From Botryllus schlosseri (taxonomy: Eukaryota): a DNA stretch of 64,000 bases. The position numbers and the translations under genes were made by a program. Under the pieces are notes generated by a model. That model saw only the letters and a list, made by a program, of their open reading frames with translations. It made no database searches and was not told where the DNA came from. The stretch spans positions 9,858,001 to 9,922,000 of the forward strand of contig CM119381.1 in the NCBI GenBank assembly GCA_051294905.1, written 5' to 3'. Shown here piece by piece: positions 2,238 through 63,792 of this stretch. Each line of letters begins with the position of its first letter. The first letter of the stretch is position 1.

Positions 2238-2490
2238 AGATCAATCAGTTATTTATTAATATTTTCATCATTTCAAAACATCACAAGACTGCGACATCTT
2301 GAAAAGATACGAAGGTGTCGAAACAACTTGGAGTAGCCCTTAAGATCATACACCAACCTTAGCCTAGGGCCTAGGCGAAGTAAAGAAGAGACATGCACAC
2401 TGAATGAAAAGTAATGCAGAAAATATAAGACGCAAGCGACAAAATGAGGTGGCATGTGGTGGAGGGCGAGGTCGAGGTCAAGAACCAATT
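2238..2490 (-). mobile_element. LINE 3' UTR fragment, same subfamily as 9290-10891
   Basis: Reverse complement matches about 9420-9525 plus 10758-10891. A decayed copy lies near 50140-50230. Confidence 0.8.
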
Positions 2491-2836
2491 TTGTTTAAGA
2501 TAAGTTATTAATATTGTATTCCAACTGATCATTTTGAATTTAAAATAGGTGGTTGACACAATTGACATAAAACTGATTCAATTAATGCAACGTTATCTTA
2601 GTATTTAGGTAAATACTGATATACATGATTGAAGTTTATTTATGTACAGGATATCCGTGAAAGTCTCCAATTATGATAAATCTAATACCCCGAAATATAA
2701 GTATGTTGATGTATTTTGATTTAAAACAGTCTTCGGCGTGTCAAAATAACAAGTAGATTGAATTTCTGAACCTTATAGTACGATTGAGCTGATTTTTTAT
2801 CCAGCCAATACAGCGAAAATATGAGATTTATTGTAA

Positions 2837-3053
2837 AAAGGGCCACGGTTTCAAAAAGATCAACATCGAAAAGAATTGTGAAATCGGGCACTCTAGGCCG
2901 AGATGGATGTTAGAATAAAAGGATCGCTACCGATGCGTGTCGTTCGACATCCTCCTATCTGTTCATGACATAGCATTGTGTCTTATCGCATTGTACATTG
3001 TGTGTGACTTGTTCAGATGAAAAATATAACCCAAGGATGTTATGTTATGTTAC
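2837..3053 (+). repeat. LINE/SINE 3'-end family B
   Basis: About 215-bp unit ending in a (TGTTA)n tail; copies at about 8790-9010 (+), 11962-12166 (+), 39437-39600 (-). Confidence 0.8.
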
Positions 3054-4742
3054 GTCCGGTTGAATCGGCAATCAACAACAACCAATGGGAATAGCATAAG
3101 GCCATGAAAATAAGACAACTAGATATTTATGATATGTGGTCTTCTATCATTCCCGCAGTAAGCTATAAGCATTGTGCCATATGTTAATTATTAAACGGAT
3201 TCACCAAAACGAGACAATGAAATGGCGAATTGTGAAATGAACGTCATATATCAACTGCAGAGTTTCGTCAGCAGCTACTAGAACACTTGCAAGTTGTATA
3301 GCAGCTCATCAGTGATCGAGGTGTTGCAGGTGCAGCAGCTGTGTTATTCGTGCCAAAGAATACTTACGGAGAGAGTTACAATAGCTTTCGAATATATTAT
3401 CGTATTTCCGTGTTATGACATTATGATGTGGACGAAATCTCATCATATTAGAGTTGAGCAACGCATAATGAATTCGACTATTACCATATCCGGGCTCACC
3501 CTTGTAATTTAGATTTCCCTACATCCGATCTTCACATAAGCCAGCATGTGCTAATTTTTAACTCAACTGCCAATTCTTTGCGGTGTCAGTTTAGCCGCCT
3601 TGACTGCCGAGCGAATTCGGACGGAAACGACTGTACATTTTCCCCGCCACTCGATCGTTATAGCTCGCCAATGGATAATTGGGAACTAGCTGGTATTATT
3701 AGGGCGATTATTTTTTACCTAAAATTGGATATTTTGACATTTATAACGTAAAGAAATGAATCTTGACTAAATTGTGACCTCGAGTGTTTGAATTACGCAT
3801 CGTTGCACAAAATGTTAGAATTATGGTTAGAACTGTCCGTCATTGAACAAGTATGCTAATTGGCAAGAATGAAAGCGGCAGTTGTTGACTGGCGAGGATA
3901 TTGTTTGTGGTGTTCGTGGTGTTTTGTTGGTAATTTACACCATGGCGTGATGGCGAATAGCAGAGTATAGTGTAGATTTGACACGATCGATTATTCGAAG
4001 GGAACCCTTTCCAAATTGCAGTGTGCATCTTCGCGACTAAGCAAAATGGTTAACGAGTAATAATACAGGTGCCACATCGAAGGTATATACAGTATTCACG
4101 ATTCAAAATAGAGGGGCTCTTTCTGTCATATTGGGATACCGGCATAACTCAAAACTACGTTCTACTTGACAAGATCCAAAGTGTAAAAAGTCGGCATAAC
4201 AACTTGAGTAAGTAGTACAGGTAAGCAACACCTACTTGGGTACTCACACAAAGCAAAAGCAGTTCTTTACTGTAAGGATTTTTTGGCTTTATTTTCGTCT
4301 ACATCATCCAGATGCTTTGCCGATGTACAGGTGCGCGGTGACCGTTTTATAGATTTCTACCAATGAATATTACATTATTCGTATATGCGTTTGCTGTATT
4401 TATCTTTATTTTCACACTCCAAAGTTTGTAACTATTATTTATAGTATAGCAATCTACTCCAACGTGCGCGGTGTACGAGCTAACCAACGTAATACTCGTT
4501 TTTATATCGAATATATAGCGCCGCATCAGTGTTATCATGAAGATAATTCATTTATTGATGATCTGAAATTCTAATAAGTTCCATTACGTTATCCATAAAC
4601 GATACACACTGAAGCAATTGGTGTAAAAAGCAGGATATTTCATCTAATGTCAACAATGCAGGGATAATGCTCATAACTTACGAGTAATCTAAATATTCAT
4701 CGCGGAGCTTTCAATTAATGTAACAGTGACGTCACAATTACA

Positions 4743-6002
4743 ATGCCCGGTCAGTTCTTGTTATCAGCATTTGCGCATTCCATCCGGCGTAGTGCAACAA
4801 TAAGGCTGCCTCACTATCTTCGAAGACGGTTTAAACATACCGGTGGACTTTCATTCGAACTATCAAACGAGCAGAAAGAAATACAGGACGCCGTGAAAAA
4901 GTTAGTAGCCGAAGAGGTTATTCCAAAAGCGCCAGAGCTTGACAGAACCGGCGAGTACCCATGGGAAATCTTGCGTCAATTCCATGATCTTGGATTCTTG
5001 AACCTTCAAATTCCCAACGAATACGGCGGAGCAGGTCAGGGACTTCTCGTAAATAGCATAGTAACGGAACAGGTTGGATACGGGTGTACCGGCGTTCACA
5101 ACGCAGCAGATGCGAATGGACTAGGTCAAACTCCTCTTTTAGTGGCCGGAAATCATGACCAGAAAAAGAAATATCTTGGAAGAATGACGGAACAGCTGTT
5201 AATGTGCGCGTACGCTGTGACAGAACCTGGTACAGGGTCTGATGTTGCAGCGATCGCAACGAAAGCTGATAAAAAGGGCGGCAGCTTCGTAATGAATGGA
5301 CAGAAGATGTGGATTACAAACGGCGGAGTGGCGAACTGGTACTTCGTCCTCGCTAAAACGAACTCAGAAAAATCAGTATCTCCGTATAAATCTTTGTCCG
5401 GCTTCATCGTCGACGCAGACGCGCCAGGAGTGACTCCAGGCAAAAAAGAAGATAATATGGGACAGCGGTGCTCAAACACAGCTGGGATATCATTCGAGGA
5501 CGTTGTAATTCCCAAAGACAATTTACTGGGAAAGGAGGGGGATGGATTTAATATAGCAATGTCGGTATTCGATAAAGTGAGACCTGTTGTCGCCGCAGCG
5601 GCCACTGGCTTGGCACAAAGAGCACTTGATGAAGCCACAAAATATGCAATGGAACGGCGAACGATGGGGAAATTGATCGGGGAACATCAAGCCGTCGCCT
5701 TCATGCTGGCTGAAATGGCAATTCAGGTCGAGTTAGCACGTATGTCGACGTATAAGTCGGCATGGATGATTGATCGCAATCTTAAAAGCACACTACATTC
5801 ATCCATAGCAAAAGCCTTTTCATCGGATGCCGTGAATAAATGTACTACTGACGCTGTTCAGATTTTCGGAGGTGCTGGATATAACAAGGACTACCCCGTA
5901 GAGAAACTTATGCGGGATGCAAAAATATTCCAGATTTACGACGGAACATCGCAAATTCAGCGGCTTATTATTTCCCGCGAACATTTGTCGAGGTATGCGT
6001 AA
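4743..6002 (+). CDS. ACADM: Medium-chain acyl-CoA dehydrogenase-like protein, mitochondrial; intronless; catalytic Glu replaced by Asp
   Basis: 419-aa uninterrupted ORF with Arg-rich presequence and MCAD motifs [69 protein letters not shown] 6271 and AATAAA 6284 follow. Confidence 0.93.
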
Positions 6003-6654
6003 CAGAAATTTGCGAAATATGTGGGCGTATTTTTTAGCTATATATTGTCTTTATATAGATCTACCTATAGTTCCCGCCATTTTAGAAGCCAATTCTCTCT
6101 ATCCTATGCATATTTCAGAGTTATTTTTCTGAGGCTCTGAGTAGCTCTTAGGCTAATTATATATTTCTTCGATTAGGTCATGTGTGTTATCATATACATT
6201 CTCCAGATTGTGCGCGTTATTTGCGAAATTCCACTGCATTTTGTCTCGTTTTCTATAGCACAGACTTATTATTAAATGCCTCCAATAAAAACTGGTACAT
6301 CAATTGATGGGAGGTTTTCTATAGTTATCCACGCACAGTGTTCCATTATTCGCTAAGGCGACAACACTGAAAAAATCGTAAATTTACGAATTTACGAACA
6401 GTTAATGTGACAATATTTGTAATAGTGGACAACCAAGGTCGACTCCAGTTACTGAGTTCCTATACCTAAGTATTGGAAGTTTATCTATAGGCTGCTCCTC
6501 ATCACCTATGATCCGCGTAAGCGCGGTGTCTTAAAAGACCTAGAGGGGGAGATACGGAATCATAATAAAGAAATGGCCTGGTGCAAATGACCAATGTAGT
6601 AGAAAAACCATGCATACCAAAACAATAACAAATAATCTTACGCAAGATGGTAAC

Positions 6655-7689
6655 TAGGGATAGCCCGAACCCCTAAAAGGTTCAGGTTCGGGTGAACGCG
6701 AACCTTTTTGAAAGGTTCAATGTGAAGTGTGAACGCAAACGTGAACCTATGACGTCACGTGACGTCATATTGCCAATTCCACCCCTACACTACAGTGAAG
6801 TGATATAATAATGTGCTGTGCACGATACCAAACGACGACTCAGGCCACAGTACGCCACAATGATGCCGAAGTACATGCTGACTTTTTAAACGTCATCAAT
6901 TGTATCAACTGGAGCAATCAAATGCTATATCAATCCTATAAAATCAATATCTTCCGTCGCTTTGCCAACAATTTTGACGAGGCGTTGCAAGGGAATATAA
7001 GCTTACGCCTTAATGGTCTAGGCCAGACCGGACATTGTATTCGGCGTCTGACTATTACTGCTACATTGATATTGAGCAGACGAGTGTAAAAAGGCTTTCT
7101 ATGCTTGCAACCGATATTACCCCATAAACAAAGGTAGCCAACGCCCCAATTGCACGAATTTGGTTTTCATGATACAACAAACATATCAAATCAAGATAGA
7201 TCCCGTTAGCCTTCTAGATTTTTTACATGAGACAAAAATGTATTCATCGCATATCAATTTCATTGATTGGTTAAACAGGCATCATTCTGACTATACCTAC
7301 AAGAAGTGCATTTCGTTATTGAAGTTGTGTGATTGCGGGTGAAGCTCACAGCATAGAGTCACTAAATATTCACAAACGGAAAGATGAATATTTTGAGCAA
7401 ACATGTGTAAGTATAAAAATTTTGAGATTGGCTAGGCGCATGCTCGTTTAGTGTCATTTAGTTATTTTATGGTGCCAGCGCCATGCATAGAGTGCATGGT
7501 CCGAAGTTGAAATGCAAAGAATTTCAACAAAATATGTAGTATAATGACGCGGAAAATTGTAATATATGAAAAAGGTTCACAGTGCAGAACCTACCAAGGC
7601 TCGTTTGTGAACGTGAACCTTTTTCATATATTACAAATTTCCGCGTCAATAAACTACATCTTTCTTACCTCAAGTTCACACCAGCCCTA
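6655..7689. mobile_element. Non-autonomous hAT (Ac-like TAGGGAT termini) MITE
   Basis: Left TAGGGATAGCCCGAACC, right GTTCACACCAGCCCTA; subterminal GTGAACC/GGTTCA repeats; second copy at 63473. TSD not cleanly resolved. Confidence 0.7.
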
Positions 7690-8148: not shown

Positions 8149-8789
8149 ACTATGACCGCACCTCAAATGCAACAATGTCAGGTGACCTAAGCTCGAAAGG
8201 GGCAAAAAGGATTTCTTAAATAAACATAAAATTGATATATTTTGGGGCAGATTTATTCAACTCGTCGTAATATGTTTTCTTCGCACTTTATGCGATTTAT
8301 AGTGTCACTGAGATCTCTTGATATTATTATGGGGACCCGCGTCCAAAAGTATTTTTTAAATATTACAAATAATTAAAAATATACATTCCCAGAAATGAGT
8401 TTAATTGCATTCGCAATTGTTGCTGGTTGCTGCTGTTGTATATTTACAAAATCGGTGCTTATCGCCTGTTGGTCTTTTGCAACACGATAAAACGATGCGT
8501 AGCCTACAAGGAAATGAACCAGCTGGGTCAGTAAATCTTATACGAATGTGAGATATATGGAAACGAGCTTTCGGGAATGAACATGTTCAATTGTCAATGT
8601 AAAATTATAGGCCCTAAATTTCCGAAATCATGAATTCCATCAGTTCCACTGGCAAATCTGATCACGTGGGTTTACAGGAGATGAAATAATAATAGTCATC
8701 ATAATCTAGGCAAAATTAACCCTCACAATATTATTGACAGTGTAATCCCACGAAAGAAAGCACTCAAAAGGAATGGAAAGAACTAGTAG

Positions 8790-9010
8790 AAAGGGCCGCG
8801 GCTTAGAAAAGATCAACATCGAAAAGAACTGTGACATCGGGCACTCTAGGCCGAGGTGGATGTTAGAGTTAAAGTAAAGAATCGCTATTGATGCGTGTCG
8901 TTCGACATCCTCCTATCTGTTCATGACATCGCATTGTGTCTTATCGCATTGTACATTAATTGTGTGTGACTTGTTCAGATGAAAAATATAACCCAACGAT
9001 ATTATCTTAT
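8790..9010 (+). repeat. LINE/SINE 3'-end family B copy
   Basis: Highly similar to 2837-3053. Confidence 0.8.
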
Positions 9011-9289
9011 ATATCCGCAAATAAAACACTCTTTCCTCAATGAAATCGACGATCATACGACGAGTGAAAATCTTTCACGCGGGTTAAATAAAGGAGAATA
9101 TGTTTCTCGGCATACTTGGTGAAGAGCAAATTTTTAACAGAGATGCGATTATAGGTGATTCTTGATGAGTTTCCGACCGTGATTCCGACTATAAGCACAC
9201 ATCACGATTTCGAGATATTTGCATATTCACAGTTATGCTGTTATCTACTTCGGGCGAAAATTGCGCTGTAATTTAATTAATTTGTAATT

Positions 9290-10891
9290 TATTGTGGAAC
9301 AGCATCTCGACGGCTATCCGACAGTCGTTGAGCATGTCCGCATTCAAGTCGAAATACAAGCAATTTCTTCTAAATCAATACTAGCCAGTCTTCAGGATTA
9401 CCGAACCACGACCTAACATCGACCTCGCCCTCCGCCACATGCCACCTCATTTTGTCGCTTGCGTCTTATAGTCTCTGCATTACTTTTCATTCAGTGTGCA
9501 TGCCTCTTATTTACTTCGCCTAGGCCAGAGGTCTCAAACTCAAATGTGCTCGCGGGCCAGTTTTCCAGTTTTGACGACGCCGCGGGCCGCAGCATTATAG
9601 GGGTATTCTATGTATTTCCAAGTAGTTCTTATTTGGCGGGAATTAATTGTCCTATTGAAAGTGAGCCGATCCAAAAGATTGACAGTAAACACACATCGTC
9701 AAAATGTGATTTCCTCTTGTATCAATTTAGGCCTGGCACGAAAAGAACCATCAATTTATTTAGGCCTGGCACGAAAAGAACCATCAATTTATACCTATTT
9801 GAATAGAATTGTTGTTGTACTTGATATATAATAATTATAAGATATAGACACCATATGGGCGGACAAATGTATGATGCCATCATAAAAGCTATCGGGTTAT
9901 AATTTTGCAGCTACTATGAGTATTTTGAATTTAACAGATTGATAATAGAGACTGATCTGATATCAAAACATTTTTAGGTTGAGCATTGTAATTCCAATCC
10001 AGGATTCGGGTATATTTCTGAAAAGTAGGCTATTAATCTCATGGCCAAATATCTTCAAATATAGGAGAAGAAAAAACCTAAATATATTAATGAATGTGTC
10101 CTGATGATTGAAACGCCGAGCGGCCCATTGTTGTTACATCGTTGGAGCGTACCACTACGGTATACTCTGTACCTTTAAGTGGCCTTAATAATATGGTTGA
10201 GCGACCAAAGAAATAACATGGTTTAGCGACCAAAGATGTAACTAACAGATTGCCAATGGTTGCCATAACTACTTACTTAGTTAACGAAAAACCAAGCTGC
10301 GACCTTCTGATCTATTACTATTTCCCTGATACGCGATTAGTTTGTTGCGTCCATGGTTCTAACAAATTCACGGCATTTTGAGCCACTCCGAGTCCACTCG
10401 AGTCATTTTCATTTTGCCATCGAGTTAGCCCGAGTCTGAGTAATTCTAAAAAAGGTAGCGTCCAAGTCCAACTCACAAATTTCAGTCACGAATCGTCTAA
10501 GGGTCAGGTTTTGTCATCATGAATTGGAAATGTGGCGAAATAGTGAATCATCCACTGCATGGTCGCGTTTGCAATTGATGTGATTGTGAAAGTTTGATGA
10601 ATAGTTTCAGGCTTTCGGGGCAATTTATGAGGGAATTTTCACTTTATAACCTGGAAAGATATATGTGACACTCATATATTGTAAAATTCATAAAAATCTA
10701 AAATGTCGTCGCGGGCCGCACTAAATGCTCTGGCGGGCCGCGTGTTTGAGACCTCTGGCCTAGGCTATGGCGGGTGTCTGATCTCAAAGGCTACTCCAAA
10801 GTTGTTTCGACACCTTCCTATCTTTTCATTGTATCGCAGTCTTGAGATGTTTTTGAAACGATGAAAATATTGATAAACCTGATTGATTGAT
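9290..10891 (+). mobile_element. Related LINE 3' end split by the hAT MITE at 9526-10757
   Basis: 9290-9525 and 10758-10891 rejoin into a sequence colinear with 60870-61200; (GATT)n tail. Ends approximate. Confidence 0.8.
9526..10757. mobile_element. Buster/Charlie-type hAT MITE inserted in a LINE 3' UTR
   Basis: Perfect TIR CAGAGGTCTCAAAC / GTTTGAGACCTCTG; exact TSD GCCTAGGC (9518-9525, 10758-10765); GCGGGCCGC subterminal motifs. Confidence 0.92.
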
Positions 10892-11149
10892 CTAACGGTG
10901 CTACAATTCATGAAGCATTTTGTGCATGACTGATAAAATTAGGAAGGCAATTATTATTCCGTTTTGCCGGTATTTTCGCAAAACAAGTGTTGTATTAAGC
11001 AGTTGGGTCTACTTCCAGATTTAGATGGTGCTTCGTCAGTGGTGAATACACGCAGATTATTTTCCTCTCATTGGGTGGGCTGATAGTTATGAAGGTCGTG
11101 CCAGTTGTCAAGTGTAAAGTTTTCATCAGATAATGACATATCGTACTTT

Positions 11150-13457: not shown

Positions 13458-14585
13458 ATGCCACAAACTTCTCTTCGGGAAGAAAGGTTGTTCTTCTCAG
13501 TCATCAACAACAAACCGCTGCAAATCTTATTGTTTCTGCTCACCCTCTCTTCTGTCGCAATGTTCTATATGTTCGTTGGATCGAACGAAAGCTTCCTCAC
13601 CGAAACTGACGCGCTAAGAGAGAAGGATCGTGTTGTGAAGGAGAAAAGAGCAGACACCGCTTACGTTGACCAGGCAATGAAACACGCCGACGAATTTAAC
13701 AACGACTATCACATTCTCTTCATGTTCACAAAAGTCTCGCAGAATCCAAGTTTGCATAAAAAATTGAAGACCGTACTTGACTCTATGTTTGAAAACGCAA
13801 AGTTTGAACCGCAGGAAATTCTACATCTACATTTCGTTACCGATGACGCAGGTAAAGCTCTGATCGAAGATGAGTTACTTCATCACGAGCAGCACCCAGA
13901 CGTTCATCTACAAAGTCACATTCACGTCGCAGACGATTTAGCCACCAAAGTCCACCCAATCGTGGAATCTATGCAGAAACATTTCGGCAACCACAATTAC
14001 TTTCAAGACGCCATATTTTTCCTTTCCATCGCCATGCATCGTATCATGCCTCGAAATATTCATAGGATGGTGCAGTTGGACTTGGATCTTAGAATCGATG
14101 GGAATATCCGCGATCTGTGGGATGAATTCAATTATTTCAAACACACCACCCTGTTCGGCCTGGCGCGAGAGAACCAACCCGTATACCGGCACTTGTTCTG
14201 GAAACATCGCAAAGAGAATCCGGGCACCAAAGTCGGATCGCCGCCACCAGATGGATTAACTGGATTTAATTCTGGAGTCGTGCTGCTAGACTTAGATAGA
14301 ATTCGCGGATCGGAATTTTACAATGACTTTTTGGACAGTGGCAAAATTGAGTCGCTCGTAAATAAATATCACTTCAAAGGTCACCTCGGGGATCAAGATT
14401 TCTTCACGCTGATGAGTATGGACTATCCAAATCTCTTCTATAATCTCGACTGTGTGTGGAACCGTCAGCTATGTCAATGGTGGAAGGGACGAGGCTATGA
14501 AGATATATTTGACAGATATTTTACTTGCAATGGAGATGTCAAGATATGGCATGGGAATTGCAATACACCGTTTCCTGAAGAATAG
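13458..14585 (+). CDS. XXYLT1: Xyloside xylosyltransferase 1 (GT8, type II membrane); intronless CDS
   Basis: 375-aa ORF with N-terminal TM segment (ILLFLLTLSSVAMFYMFVG), DxD in QLDLDL, GFNSGV, HLGDQDFF, WNRQLC, KIWHGNC. Confidence 0.92.
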   Translation: MPQTSLREERLFFSVINNKPLQILLFLLTLSSVAMFYMFVGSNESFLTETDALREKDRVVKEKRADTAYVDQAMKHADEFNNDYHILFMFTKVSQNPSLHKKLKTVLDSMFENAKFEPQEILHLHFVTDDAGKALIEDELLHHEQHPDVHLQSHIHVADDLATKVHPIVESMQKHFGNHNYFQDAIFFLSIAMHRIMPRNIHRMVQLDLDLRIDGNIRDLWDEFNYFKHTTLFGLARENQPVYRHLFWKHRKENPGTKVGSPPPDGLTGFNSGVVLLDLDRIRGSEFYNDFLDSGKIESLVNKYHFKGHLGDQDFFTLMSMDYPNLFYNLDCVWNRQLCQWWKGRGYEDIFDRYFTCNGDVKIWHGNCNTPFPEE

Positions 14586-40237: not shown

Positions 40238-46670
<6,433 letters not shown>

Positions 46671-48337: not shown

Positions 48338-49594
48338 TTAAAAATATTTCCCCAGCCTTTGTGGGTTTTGCGATGGATAGTATGTTTGCGACCTGCGTTC
48401 AGAGTTGAACTGCGCCTGTGAAGTCCCCGGCATTGGCGGAGGCATCAGAGGCATTGGAGGCGGACCCGGTCCCATCAGGGGTGGTGGCATCACCCTTTGC
48501 GGTCCAAATGTTCCAGGGGGCGGTGGTTCATCAGGATGGGGCCTTTTCTTGCCTCTCGGACCTCCTTTGAGGATATCTTCCGGCATCGGCAGAGCTCCAG
48601 GAAGACCAGGGACAGGGGGTAAGGATATTTCTTTTTCTTCAGATTTTGAAGTGAGTGCCCTAGACGAGCCTTGTGATCTGCCCCATCTTATGGCCAGCTT
48701 TTTTCCCTTGATTACTAATTTTCCGAGACTCTTTTCAGCTGCTAAAGTAGCTTCGGACCGTTTTGTAAACTGGACAAACGCACAGCTTTGCTTGGAAGCA
48801 ATATGAATCGATCTAATTTCACCAAATTGATAAAAGTGATCACGAAGGTCCTGCTCATTGATTTCTTCCGTGACACCACCAATGTACAAGGTCGTTATTG
48901 TTTTGTCTTCGGGTGCAACAAGGGTAATGTCCGGGCAATTTGCGGCTCTCTTCATGAGCTTGTCCGCAACTGGGTCATTAACACCGTAATATCGATCCTT
49001 GATGTTTTGATCCGATAATGGATCGTCTGGATCTGTTGGTGTTTCATGACGATAGGGACATTCTTCTCCACGTTTACATTCGCCTTTGACCCAGAAGGAA
49101 CATATATGGGGCATGTTTCGTTTATAATAGGGAGTATTTCGTGCTAGACGAGAAAGTAAGTCATTAGCAGCCTGAGCTTTGGCTATTTCACCAACTGGCG
49201 TGGTTCCATCCGTATTCGCAATGGCCCTTTCCATATTCTGTGTGTAGTATTCTTTGTTTACATCCGACTTGGGCAGATCCTCAATCATACCCAGGGCTTG
49301 GTCACGGACCTGGACAGGCAAACCGTATTCCAAGTCGAGAAGGCAGGTTTGACAAGTGTTTTTCAATTTGGAGCAAGTCTGACATATTTCAGTTTTCTTG
49401 AATCGCATCCGCGCTCCGGGACACCATCGGAAAGTCGTAAACGGTCTGTCACAAATCTTACATTCCTGTCCGAACTTTTCTTTCATCATACGAATGTATG
49501 GATTGTCCCCGAGACATGTCTGGCACAGAATGGGGAAATCAGCTTCCTCCCAGTTTTGTCTGTTATACCTGTTTGCTCCTAGAGACGTTGCCAT
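48338..49594 (-). CDS. RBM22: Pre-mRNA splicing factor RBM22; intronless
   Basis: 418-aa ORF beginning [29 protein letters not shown]; CCCH finger [22 protein letters not shown] (LYIGG, CAFVQF), Pro-rich tail ending [11 protein letters not shown]. Confidence 0.97.
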
Positions 49595-58565: not shown

Positions 58566-60684
58566 GGGGAGACCGGGGTTAGTTGTTACGATTTTGCCCA
58601 TTTTCGGCCTCACGGCTTTTCTACTCGTCCTGCGCAAATGATTTTGTTACACTGTCTACACTGATCATCCACTTACTTTTACAAAGTAGAATGGAACTTC
58701 AAGCTCTTATACGTTTGGAAATATTTGCATTTTAAACAGGTGAGTCTTCTGTCATAACTTGCCCCGAGATAGGGGCAAGTTGTGACTGGAGAGGAGGCAG
58801 GTTGTTACATTGAAATTGTCAGCTGAAAACTCTATATCCATAATAAAAGCATTGTTGTAACCATGTGTATTGAAAACGAAATGAAAGAAAAATCAAACGA
58901 AACAGCAAAATATGAAAAGAAGTCATTCAGTCCTTGCAAAAATCACACACGTAGGGTGTAGAGCGATCACTGCATGCTTCATGCGCCCCTTTTGACATCC
59001 ATTGCATTTGACCCATACTTCGTCAGACCTAGAGTTGTCATATGTGTCATGGCACAGTAGGCAATGATTGTTACTAGCATCTGTGTTTGTTTCGTCAGTG
59101 AAAGCTAGGTTTCTTTTTGTTGCTTTTTTTGTTATTTTCTTTTTGTCAATCTTAGAATTTTTTGCTTCCTTCGCCAAGTGCTCCTCTTGGAGGCGATGTC
59201 GTTCAGGAGTGCTTGTTAAGATGGAGGAGCGGCGCCTCTTTCTCCCACCAATTTTTTTCTGCCTGAGTGCGGCTTTGTTGAAAGTCCAAATCATCTCTGG
59301 TGTTGTCTTGATACCAGTGGGAAAACTAGGCACTGCATCCTCCATTGATCTTGGTGTACCAACTGCATTACTTGACGTTGCAGGCTCTTCAGAGTTTTCT
59401 GGTGCGCATGCCTTGCTGTTTGAAGTAGAAGTCTCTTCCGATTCTTCTGGTGCACTTACAGCGCTGCTTGAATCAGCAGAATTCTCATCAGTATTTGCTA
59501 TTTTTGGCATATTTTCCTCTTCTGGCATGGGTCTGTCGGTCGTGTAGCTTGGAAGAAATTCCTCATCTGCAAATACATTATCATTGAATGGGAATATCCC
59601 AGCCACTTGGAACCCTTTTTGAATGTTGGCTGGGGTTGTTGCCAATGGAAGCGCCTGCTTCACAATTTCAGGGATATCAAGCATTGTCATTGGACGACCC
59701 CGATTGGTCTTCAATAATGCCCCACAAGCAGCATTGTAGTACTTTTTGAAGGGTCCGTAAACACTCCTGTCCAGAGGCTGCAACTTATGGGAGCAATGAG
59801 GAGGAAACGACAGCAACACAACTCCACTATCTCTGCAGTAATCAATCACATGTATGGACGTATGCGAGTCATGATTATCAAGTAAAAGTAACACAGGATT
59901 TTCTTTTGTACATCGAACAACTTTGATAAAATCAATCACTCTTCTTGCAGCTTCTTCCATAACCATCATAGGTGTAGTGCCTCTTTTGGTCTTTTTTTTT
60001 GTAATGCCTCACCATAATCGCAGAGAATATATAGTTTAACAACAGAATTGATCTACAAGATAGGAGCAGGTTATTGAATACATTTTCATACGTAATTGCA
60101 GAAGAATCCAAGCTGTCTTCAACTTTTTCATCACTTACTCAGTGTGGTGTAGGTCTAGTGTGGCTTTTAATGTCACTGCACAAAGATTTTGGTTGAAATA
60201 ATGCTAACCCTATCAGGATGGATGAAATTTCATTAATAATAATGCTAATCACACATCATAAATATTCAAGCAAAGATTGAGGCTAGTTGTTACAACCGTA
60301 AAAATGTGCCCCCGCCGAATACGGCCTGTTTAAGCTTACTTGCCGCCTTACTTACCGTAACCAACAAACAGCACAAAGTCAACTGTGAAACTAAACTTCA
60401 GGTCGTCCCCTTTCTATCAATGTAAATTAAACATATATCGGTCGCACGCAACCACTGATGCACCAGCGACGCTTGATTAGTAAAAGTTTTACTTTATAGC
60501 CCTCAATATACCTTTTCCTGCATAAAACTTTTTGCAAGCACATTTCGCAAGCCAGGCTTCGTTGGAAGGTACTCTCCAACCAGCCGAGCAAACTGTGTAA
60601 AAATGGTGCGCCATCTCCCGGCAAAAAAACAAACCATTGATGCTGTAACAATGTTCCCCCGTAACAACTAACCCCGGTCTCCCC
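58566..60684 (-). mobile_element. pogo/Tigger-type Tc1-mariner DNA transposon, internally deleted, 2119 bp
   Basis: Perfect 25-bp TIRs GGGGAGACCGGGGTTAGTTGTTACG (58566-58590) and its reverse complement (60660-60684); TA on both flanks; DDE_1-type ORF inside. Confidence 0.93.
58923..60015 (-). pseudogene. pogo DDE transposase pseudogene with C-terminal PHD finger
   Basis: N-terminus MVRHYKKKTKRGTTP (ATG 60015) is out of frame by one base in an A9 run. An in-frame deletion joins EEAARRVI to DFIKVVRCTKENPVLLLLDNHDSH...FPPHCSHKLQPLDRSVYGPFK. A one-base frameshift falls inside the PHD finger. Confidence 0.85.
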
Positions 60685-63472: not shown

Positions 63473-63792
63473 TAGGGATGGTGTGAACCACCAAAAGGTT
63501 CAGGTTCGTGTGAACGCGAACCTTTTTGAAAGGTTCTGTGTGAACACGAACGTGAACCTCATGACGTCACGTGACGTCATATTGCTAATTCCAACCTTAC
63601 ATTTCAGTGATGTGATAGCCTATTTAAATGTACACGATACCTAGCGACGACTCGGGCCACACAATGCTGAAGTACATATTGACGTTTTAAACGTCGCCAA
63701 ATGTATCAACTGGGGTAATCAAATGATATAATAATCCCATAAAGTCGCTGTCTTCCGCTGCTTCCCAATAATTTCGAGGGGGACTTGCAAGG
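63473..63792. mobile_element. Left part of the TAGGGAT MITE family, interrupted by a LINE 3' end
   Basis: Colinear with 6655-7000 until the (CAT)n tail at about 63793. Confidence 0.8.

Follow-up and report, generated by a model that had tools for sequence, protein, structure and literature searches.

In textbook accounts of MCAD, the catalytic base is Glu376. An ACADM-family gene within the window, by which is meant the whole 64-kb stretch of DNA that was analysed, encodes Asp in place of this residue, which raises the question of whether the substitution is real, whether the gene that carries it is still maintained by selection, and what kind of acyl-CoA dehydrogenase (ACAD) it would produce.

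Gene organization and predicted product

The features of the gene and its immediate surroundings are as follows.

4721-4726, forward strand: TAACAG, a possible splice or trans-splice acceptor, directly before TGACGTCA and 5' of ACADM
4727..4734, forward strand: TGACGTCA, a CRE-type palindrome of putative function, 9 nt upstream of the ACADM ATG
4743..6002, forward strand: MCAD/ACADM-family acyl-CoA dehydrogenase CDS, a single exon of 419 codons plus TAA, identified from the ORF list, Pfam and the tree
4743..4844, forward strand: putative mitochondrial presequence, residues 1-34, recognized by its composition (7 Arg/Lys and zero Asp/Glu)
6284..6289, forward strand: AATAAA, a candidate polyadenylation signal 282 nt past the ACADM stop codon

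The ORF contains neither an intron nor an N, and positions 5900-6002 form its 3' end. The predicted chain of approximately 420 aa features the Acyl-CoA_dh_N, Acyl-CoA_dh_M and Acyl-CoA_dh_1 domains (Pfam E-values 4e-28, 2e-25 and 1e-47, respectively). The best matches provided by phmmer against the PDB are all MCADs, namely the pig entries 1UDY/3MDD and human entries with E-values of about 1e-160 (4.5e-162 for pig MCAD). The product exhibits 60-62% identity to pig/human MCAD and 66-69% identity to the MCAD of Styela clava. AlphaFold2 (AF2) modelling of the protein gave a mean pLDDT of 93, with values above 96 across the mature part, and the predicted model superposes on human and pig MCAD with a TM-score of 0.99 and an rmsd of 0.8 A (Foldseek).

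Residues 1-34 have a pLDDT below 50 and are disordered in the AF2 model apart from a short helix at 6-15, and the alignment with mature pig MCAD begins at residue 34-35. A basic, acid-free and disordered N-terminus is as expected of a mitochondrial presequence, and the product is putatively targeted to this organelle. The numbering of the ACADM precursor is offset by 24 from that of mature MCAD. In the tunicate alignment, the FAD/CoA-contact columns W190/T192, T160/S166, D277/R280, R305, Q373/G377 and Y399/G401/T402 are all kept; in mature numbering these are Trp166/Thr168, Thr136/Ser142, Asp253/Arg256, Arg281, Gln349/Gly353 and Tyr375/Gly377/Thr378. The FAD-, CoA- and thioester-contact roles of these columns are presumed to be those of established MCAD structures. 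Upstream of the coding region, TAACAG is found 11-17 nt before the ATG in both the window ACADM and the S. clava MCAD gene (L002, 9988-9993), and is possibly a (trans-)splice acceptor shared by the two genes.

Active-site positions 376 and 255

Two codons of the gene correspond to active-site positions of MCAD.

5940..5942, forward strand: GAC, encoding Asp400, which aligns with the catalytic base Glu376 of MCAD, within aaaatattccagatttacgacggaacatcgcaaattcagcgg
5577..5579, forward strand: GTG, encoding Val279 in the column of MCAD Thr255, 'FDKVRP' opposite 'FDKTRP' in pig MCAD

The original prediction placed Asp at the Glu376 position and Val, without a compensating Glu, at the 255-equivalent, and both placements are borne out. 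For the first, the ORF codon at 5940-5942 is GAC, and in phmmer searches against the PDB D400 faces the Glu of pig MCAD 'KIYQIYEGTAQIQR' and that of MCAD 'IYQIYEGTAQIQR'; for the second, the codon at 5577-5579 and its 'FDKVRP' context give Val. An alignment with orthologues had been proposed as a check, and in every one of 144 MCAD orthologues from animals, aligned by MAFFT, the 376 column holds Glu and the 255 column Thr (144/144 each). Glu also occupies the 376 column in 80 of 80 metagenomic MCAD-like relatives, the best match of which is 61% identical to the window protein. In the AF2 model, Asp400 sits in the loop formed by residues 398-402, between helices H385-397 and H403-418, and Tyr375, Gly377 and Arg256 are retained in the window product.

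The two nearest CDSs have ACT/ACC at codon 255 where the window gene has GTG, a difference of at least two nucleotides, so that one miscalled base cannot account for the pattern at the active site. Of the 110 columns in which every other MCAD has the same residue, the window gene departs at six (F30L, T255V, G322N, N325S, A329S and E376D), compared with three for Clavelina, the next highest, and a median of zero. Asp thus forms part of a broad pattern rather than an isolated base call. In all, the window protein has 29 residues, 28 of them besides Asp, that none of the 144 MCADs carries at the same position. Judged by these alignments, Glu376Asp is genuine natural variation of an unusual kind, and no other animal MCAD in the sample shows its combination with Thr255Val.

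Comparison with other acyl-CoA dehydrogenases

An exhaustive phmmer search shows where else Asp is found at this position. Among the best 150 representatives of 50%-identity clusters, the 376 column holds Glu in 117 and Asp followed by Gly in nine (P0289, P0330, P0358, P0362, P0383, P0384, P0388, P0391 and P0396). These nine are generic bacterial ACADs that share with the window protein the Asp at the same column and an MCAD/SCAD-like single domain set. They are only 37-47% identical to the window protein and are uncharacterised, and none of the nine reaches an NCBIfam equivalog cut-off.

A catalytic Asp is also featured in ACAD10, ACAD11 and bacterial LvaC, which are 4-phosphoacyl-CoA eliminating ACADs (PMC12440821). 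In these proteins the Asp is accompanied by a kinase domain, by an HCMR motif and by an Arg near the flavin, which deal with the 4-phosphate (PMC12440821). Asp400 of the window protein resembles theirs in being a catalytic-loop Asp within an ACAD domain. The N-terminal APH-type kinase domain of ACAD10/11 is not shared, however, as the 419 aa of the window protein comprise ACAD domains only (Pfam), and neither HCMR nor HC.R is present in its sequence. ACAD10/11/LvaC also form a distant ACAD clade, whereas the window gene is phylogenetically an MCAD. ACAD10/11-like chemistry was considered for the window protein and rejected because the kinase domain, the HCMR motif and the Arg near the flavin are all absent.

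All ACADs apart from LCAD and IVD use Glu376 as their base; in these two the base is located on helix G, with LCAD Glu291 aligning with MCAD Thr255 (PMC11153573). The window protein resembles LCAD and IVD in having no Glu at the 376 column, but differs in that they carry Glu at the MCAD-255 column where it carries Val279. Since this column, the site of the LCAD/IVD base, holds Val, Asp400 is the only candidate base. The roles stated in the original prediction (Glu376 as the base, the LCAD/IVD Glu at the 255 column and Asp in ACAD10/11) agree with the published accounts (PMC11153573, PMC12440821). Of its proposal of an MCAD scaffold with altered chemistry, the scaffold is supported by Pfam, the PDB, the tree and AF2, but a change of chemistry is not supported; the ACAD10/11 hallmarks are missing, and the enrichment of changes in the substrate cavity is equivocal.

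The window protein shares with MCAD itself (pig 3MDD/1UDY and human 8SGP) the three-domain ACAD architecture, the fold and the FAD/CoA contacts, and begins with a putative presequence. It differs in having Asp for Glu376, Val for Thr255 and His-Asn-Ala-Ala-Asp at 95-99. The closest counterpart of the substitution is the engineered human MCAD Glu376Asp of Peterson, Galitz and Srivastava (Biochemistry, 1998), which is reportedly active but markedly slower than the wild type. Both proteins have the same base substitution on an MCAD scaffold; the engineered protein is a point mutant of the wild type, whereas the window gene is natural and has approximately 60 further lineage-specific changes, including Thr255Val. 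By analogy with the mutant, these further changes may compensate for the Asp base. Because the engineered enzyme is said to be so much slower, Asp in a sole MCAD would be a handicap unless compensated.

Substrate cavity

A further group of unusual residues is encoded as follows.

5097..5111, forward strand: His119-Asn120-Ala121-Ala122-Asp123, corresponding to MCAD 95-99, where the consensus is Q-T-A-I-E

The run is striking, and four of its five residues are never seen in the 144 MCADs. The cavity-lining residues of human LCAD were mapped to MCAD numbering by the structure-guided alignment of PMC11153573, in which MCAD positions 95-97 align with the cavity-lining LCAD residues Gly131-Pro132-Gly133. 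LCAD Pro132, which aligns with MCAD position 96, is held responsible for the enlarged LCAD cavity (PMC11153573). Never-seen residues are located at 5 of the 25 cavity-homologous positions (95, 96, 258, 262 and 340), an excess over expectation (hypergeometric P 0.03), whereas the alternative measure, 'differs where >=93% agree', identifies 3 of the 25 (P 0.49). Val258 is found in human MCAD too, so that P258V is nothing unusual, and the Glu-type MCAD of Clavelina also varies at positions 95 and 99. Cavity-focused remodelling is only suggested by these substitutions; as a firm result it was rejected, given that the P value depends on the measure used.

Phylogeny and intron history

The maximum-likelihood tree places the window protein as sister of the S. 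clava MCAD with support of 99/93, followed by the Logan transcript P0007 (run SRR32906200) and then Clavelina. The nearest sequence is S. clava XP_039249038.1 / XP_077968173.1, and single-sequence and tunicate-profile searches of the protein collection returned neither the exact protein nor an orthologue above 69% identity, and no orthologue bearing Asp. Introns are likewise lacking from the MCAD gene of S. clava (1269 bp for 422 aa), whereas the Clavelina gene contains introns (3783 bp for 435 aa), so the loss of introns predates the split of the window and S. clava genes. The intronless state therefore says nothing on a recent retrocopy.

Downstream of the gene, no remnant of an A-rich tail is present 3' of the AATAAA at 6284..6289. 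A recent processed retrocopy was rejected as an origin of the gene in view of the intronless S. clava gene, the lack of a poly(A) remnant, the lack of a convincing target-site duplication and the saturated dS. The ORF is flanked by an imperfect 15-nt direct repeat (13/15) at 4524-4538 / 6179-6193, which in all likelihood arose by chance rather than as a target-site duplication.

Copy number and synteny

No second ACADM copy is located within the 64-kb window, and a single ACADM was recovered for S. clava from the protein collection. In S. clava, the locus reads in the order Metallophos gene, ACADM, Gly_transf_sug gene, and a comparison extending 10 kb to either side of the two ACADM loci identified no shared flanks, only matches between the CDSs. 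The next gene of the window used for comparison, together with what follows it, is as follows.

13458-14585, forward strand: XXYLT1 (GT8), a single exon, followed by multi-exon NINL-like coding blocks (16100-38200)

The XXYLT1 product exhibits 66% identity to that of S. clava, 79% and 74% to those of two Logan transcriptomes and 62% to that of SRR32906200. On a genomic contig of another ascidian (L005), XXYLT1 and the NINL exons follow one another in the order found in the window. This contig contains no ACADM in the 7.5 kb upstream of XXYLT1, at a locus that is about 2.2 times more compact than that of the window, and the intergenic DNA of the two is too diverged to set an insertion boundary. 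The two nearest transcriptomes (SRR32906214 and SRR32906208) yielded XXYLT1, whereas neither an Asp-type nor a canonical ACADM of 230 aa or more was recovered from them. The topology of the ACADM tree, with the window and S. clava genes together and SRR32906200 outside, agrees with the XXYLT1 distances. Whether the window gene is the only ACADM of its lineage or a duplicate is about evenly balanced.

Selective constraint and evolutionary rate

In comparisons with the S. clava and SRR32906200 CDSs, synonymous sites are saturated (pS 0.82-0.87) and non-synonymous differences amount to 0.19-0.21, with pS 0.84 and pN 0.19 for S. clava alone; as a result of this saturation, dN/dS can be given as bounds only. 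The 385 mature codons compared with these two CDSs contain no stops and no indels. In a neutral simulation run just to the amount of amino-acid divergence that is private to the window branch, with indels not counted, the ORF stays stop-free in 0.6-1.8% of runs. The private replacements are conservative, with a mean BLOSUM62 score of +0.60 on the window branch (n=62) and +0.58 on the S. clava branch (n=26), whereas random single-base replacements average -0.38, with no draw out of 5000 scoring as high as the window branch. Saturated pS against low pN, the open frame, the conservative replacements and the fold of the model together argue for purifying selection for most of the history of the gene. 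By these evolutionary criteria and the predicted structure, the window ACADM is considered intact and functional and would encode a foldable flavoprotein.

The gene has nevertheless changed faster than that of its sister. Tajima-type counts give 62-66 private changes for the window against 26-28 for S. clava (p ~1e-4), a ratio of approximately 2.3, and an excess of about two-fold is stable with six outgroups ranging from tunicate to fish. The branch dN is 0.147 for the window gene and 0.072 for S. clava, and the end branch of the window protein is about 2-3 times longer than that of its S. clava sister. Tunicate MCADs are fast in general, the end branch being 1.06 for Clavelina and 1.42 for the window protein. 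XXYLT1 does not exhibit a rate asymmetry with distant outgroups. With its nearest outgroup (the P0007 species) the counts are 45 and 25, the window lineage being the faster, and this ratio is not significantly different from that of ACADM (Fisher p 0.5). Because XXYLT1 shows this similar asymmetry, the acceleration of ACADM is not clearly gene-specific, and part of the rate excess may be lineage-wide and not a property of the gene.

Interpretation of the Asp-bearing gene

The sequence comparisons lean modestly towards a working mitochondrial acyl-CoA dehydrogenase that uses an Asp base and has an altered rate or substrate preference. The gene would be an intact, selectively maintained and probably mitochondrial member of the ACADM family of a stolidobranch ascidian, in which FAD-dependent alpha,beta-dehydrogenation of acyl-CoA is presumably retained and Asp400 would take the alpha-proton. 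Its carboxylate would be one methylene shorter, with Val in place of Thr255 and the residues at 95-99, 258, 262 and 340 changed around the cavity, and these active-site and cavity changes would probably lower the turnover of straight medium-chain substrates or shift the substrate preference.

Alternatively, the third base of codon 400 could be a base-call or assembly mistake or represent a rare allele, with GAA or GAG read as GAC. Asp and Glu are indeed one base apart, but the context is not a homopolymer, and neither the at least two substitutions behind Thr255Val nor the 28 other never-seen residues would be accounted for, which makes this explanation highly improbable. If the gene were instead relaxed or recently dispensable, Glu376Asp and Thr255Val would be mildly deleterious and the ORF would be open because the relaxation is recent. 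The long end branch, the six changed columns that are otherwise invariant and the missing ACADM of the two closest transcriptomes, from which XXYLT1 was recovered, would all fit such a history. It is distinctly unlikely, however, given replacements as conservative as those on the S. clava branch, a frame without a stop or frameshift, and a change from Glu to Asp that keeps the carboxylate and is accompanied by intact cofactor-contact columns.

The other explanation to be weighed, also considered possible in the original prediction, is a neofunctionalised duplicate, with a canonical Glu-type ACADM elsewhere in the genome and the window copy released from constraint and reshaped for another acyl-CoA or for a non-standard reaction such as the elimination of ACAD10/11. 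It is consistent with the lack of synteny between the window locus and that of S. clava ACADM, with the lack of ACADM upstream of XXYLT1 on the otherwise syntenic L005, and with a protein that has the most departures from invariant MCAD columns of any sequence compared, is altered at both 376 and 255 and carries never-seen residues at five cavity-homologous positions. These observations are offset by the lack of a second copy in the window, the single ACADM in the S. clava protein collection and a tree topology that fits simple orthology, while the cavity enrichment is gone by the alternative measure, the variation at 95 and 99 in the Glu-type MCAD of Clavelina and the Val258 of human MCAD make the changes there less particular, and the kinase domain and HCMR motif are lacking. 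On balance a neofunctionalised duplicate appears rather unlikely. Its most specific form, a lineage-specific and function-switched copy in which the Asp base, a hydrophobic 255 and a re-lined cavity floor (His95/Asn96/Ala98/Asp99) serve a substituted or otherwise non-standard acyl-CoA or an elimination, is doubtful on the sequence; if true, ACADs with an Asp base would have arisen twice independently in animals, here and in ACAD10/11.

The natural Asp variant and the accompanying change of Thr255 offer a ready test of carboxylate reach and of compensating second-site changes, questions that are not known to have been addressed except with engineered mutants. Should the genome also hold a canonical copy, the gene would illustrate cleanly how the active site of a beta-oxidation enzyme diverges once the gene has been duplicated; should it be the sole copy, it would bear on the level of MCAD activity that an ascidian requires. 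In both cases it is of modest interest to enzymologists and to the study of tunicate genome evolution, and not a new kind of system.

Repeats and other genes of the window

ACADM is located within a repeat-rich interval (2238-3048 and 8786-10893). A direct repeat is found at 2833-3048 / 8786-9010 (88%), and inverted repeats lie around the gene at 2368-2478 / 9416-9526 (95%) and 2238-2368 / 10759-10893 (85%). Copies related to these flanking repeats are present near 50.1, 61 and 63.8 kb, and the flanking repeats are much younger than the divergence of the gene from that of S. clava. A dispersed repeat at 6655-6992 / 63473-63792 (78% over 339 nt, approximately 90% in its core) contains the double CRE palindrome TGACGTCACGTGACGTCA. 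The single palindrome TGACGTCA occurs in seven copies in the window against 1.06 expected, one of these being the copy that precedes the ACADM ATG by 9 nt.

The remaining genes of the window are the following.

40996-44070, forward strand: proteasomal AAA-ATPase exons of an ordinary multi-exon gene, with a Prot_ATP_ID_OB_C match and the Walker-A 'GAPGTG' in a later ORF
48338-49594, reverse strand: RBM22, a core splicing factor, intronless, 418 aa, with STL11_N, CCCH zinc finger and RRM domains
58923-59969, reverse strand: a 348-aa ORF encoding the C-terminal part of a DDE_1 (pogo/Tigger-type) transposase with an acidic/Ser-rich tail

The 348-aa DDE_1 ORF is probably a truncated or domesticated transposase.
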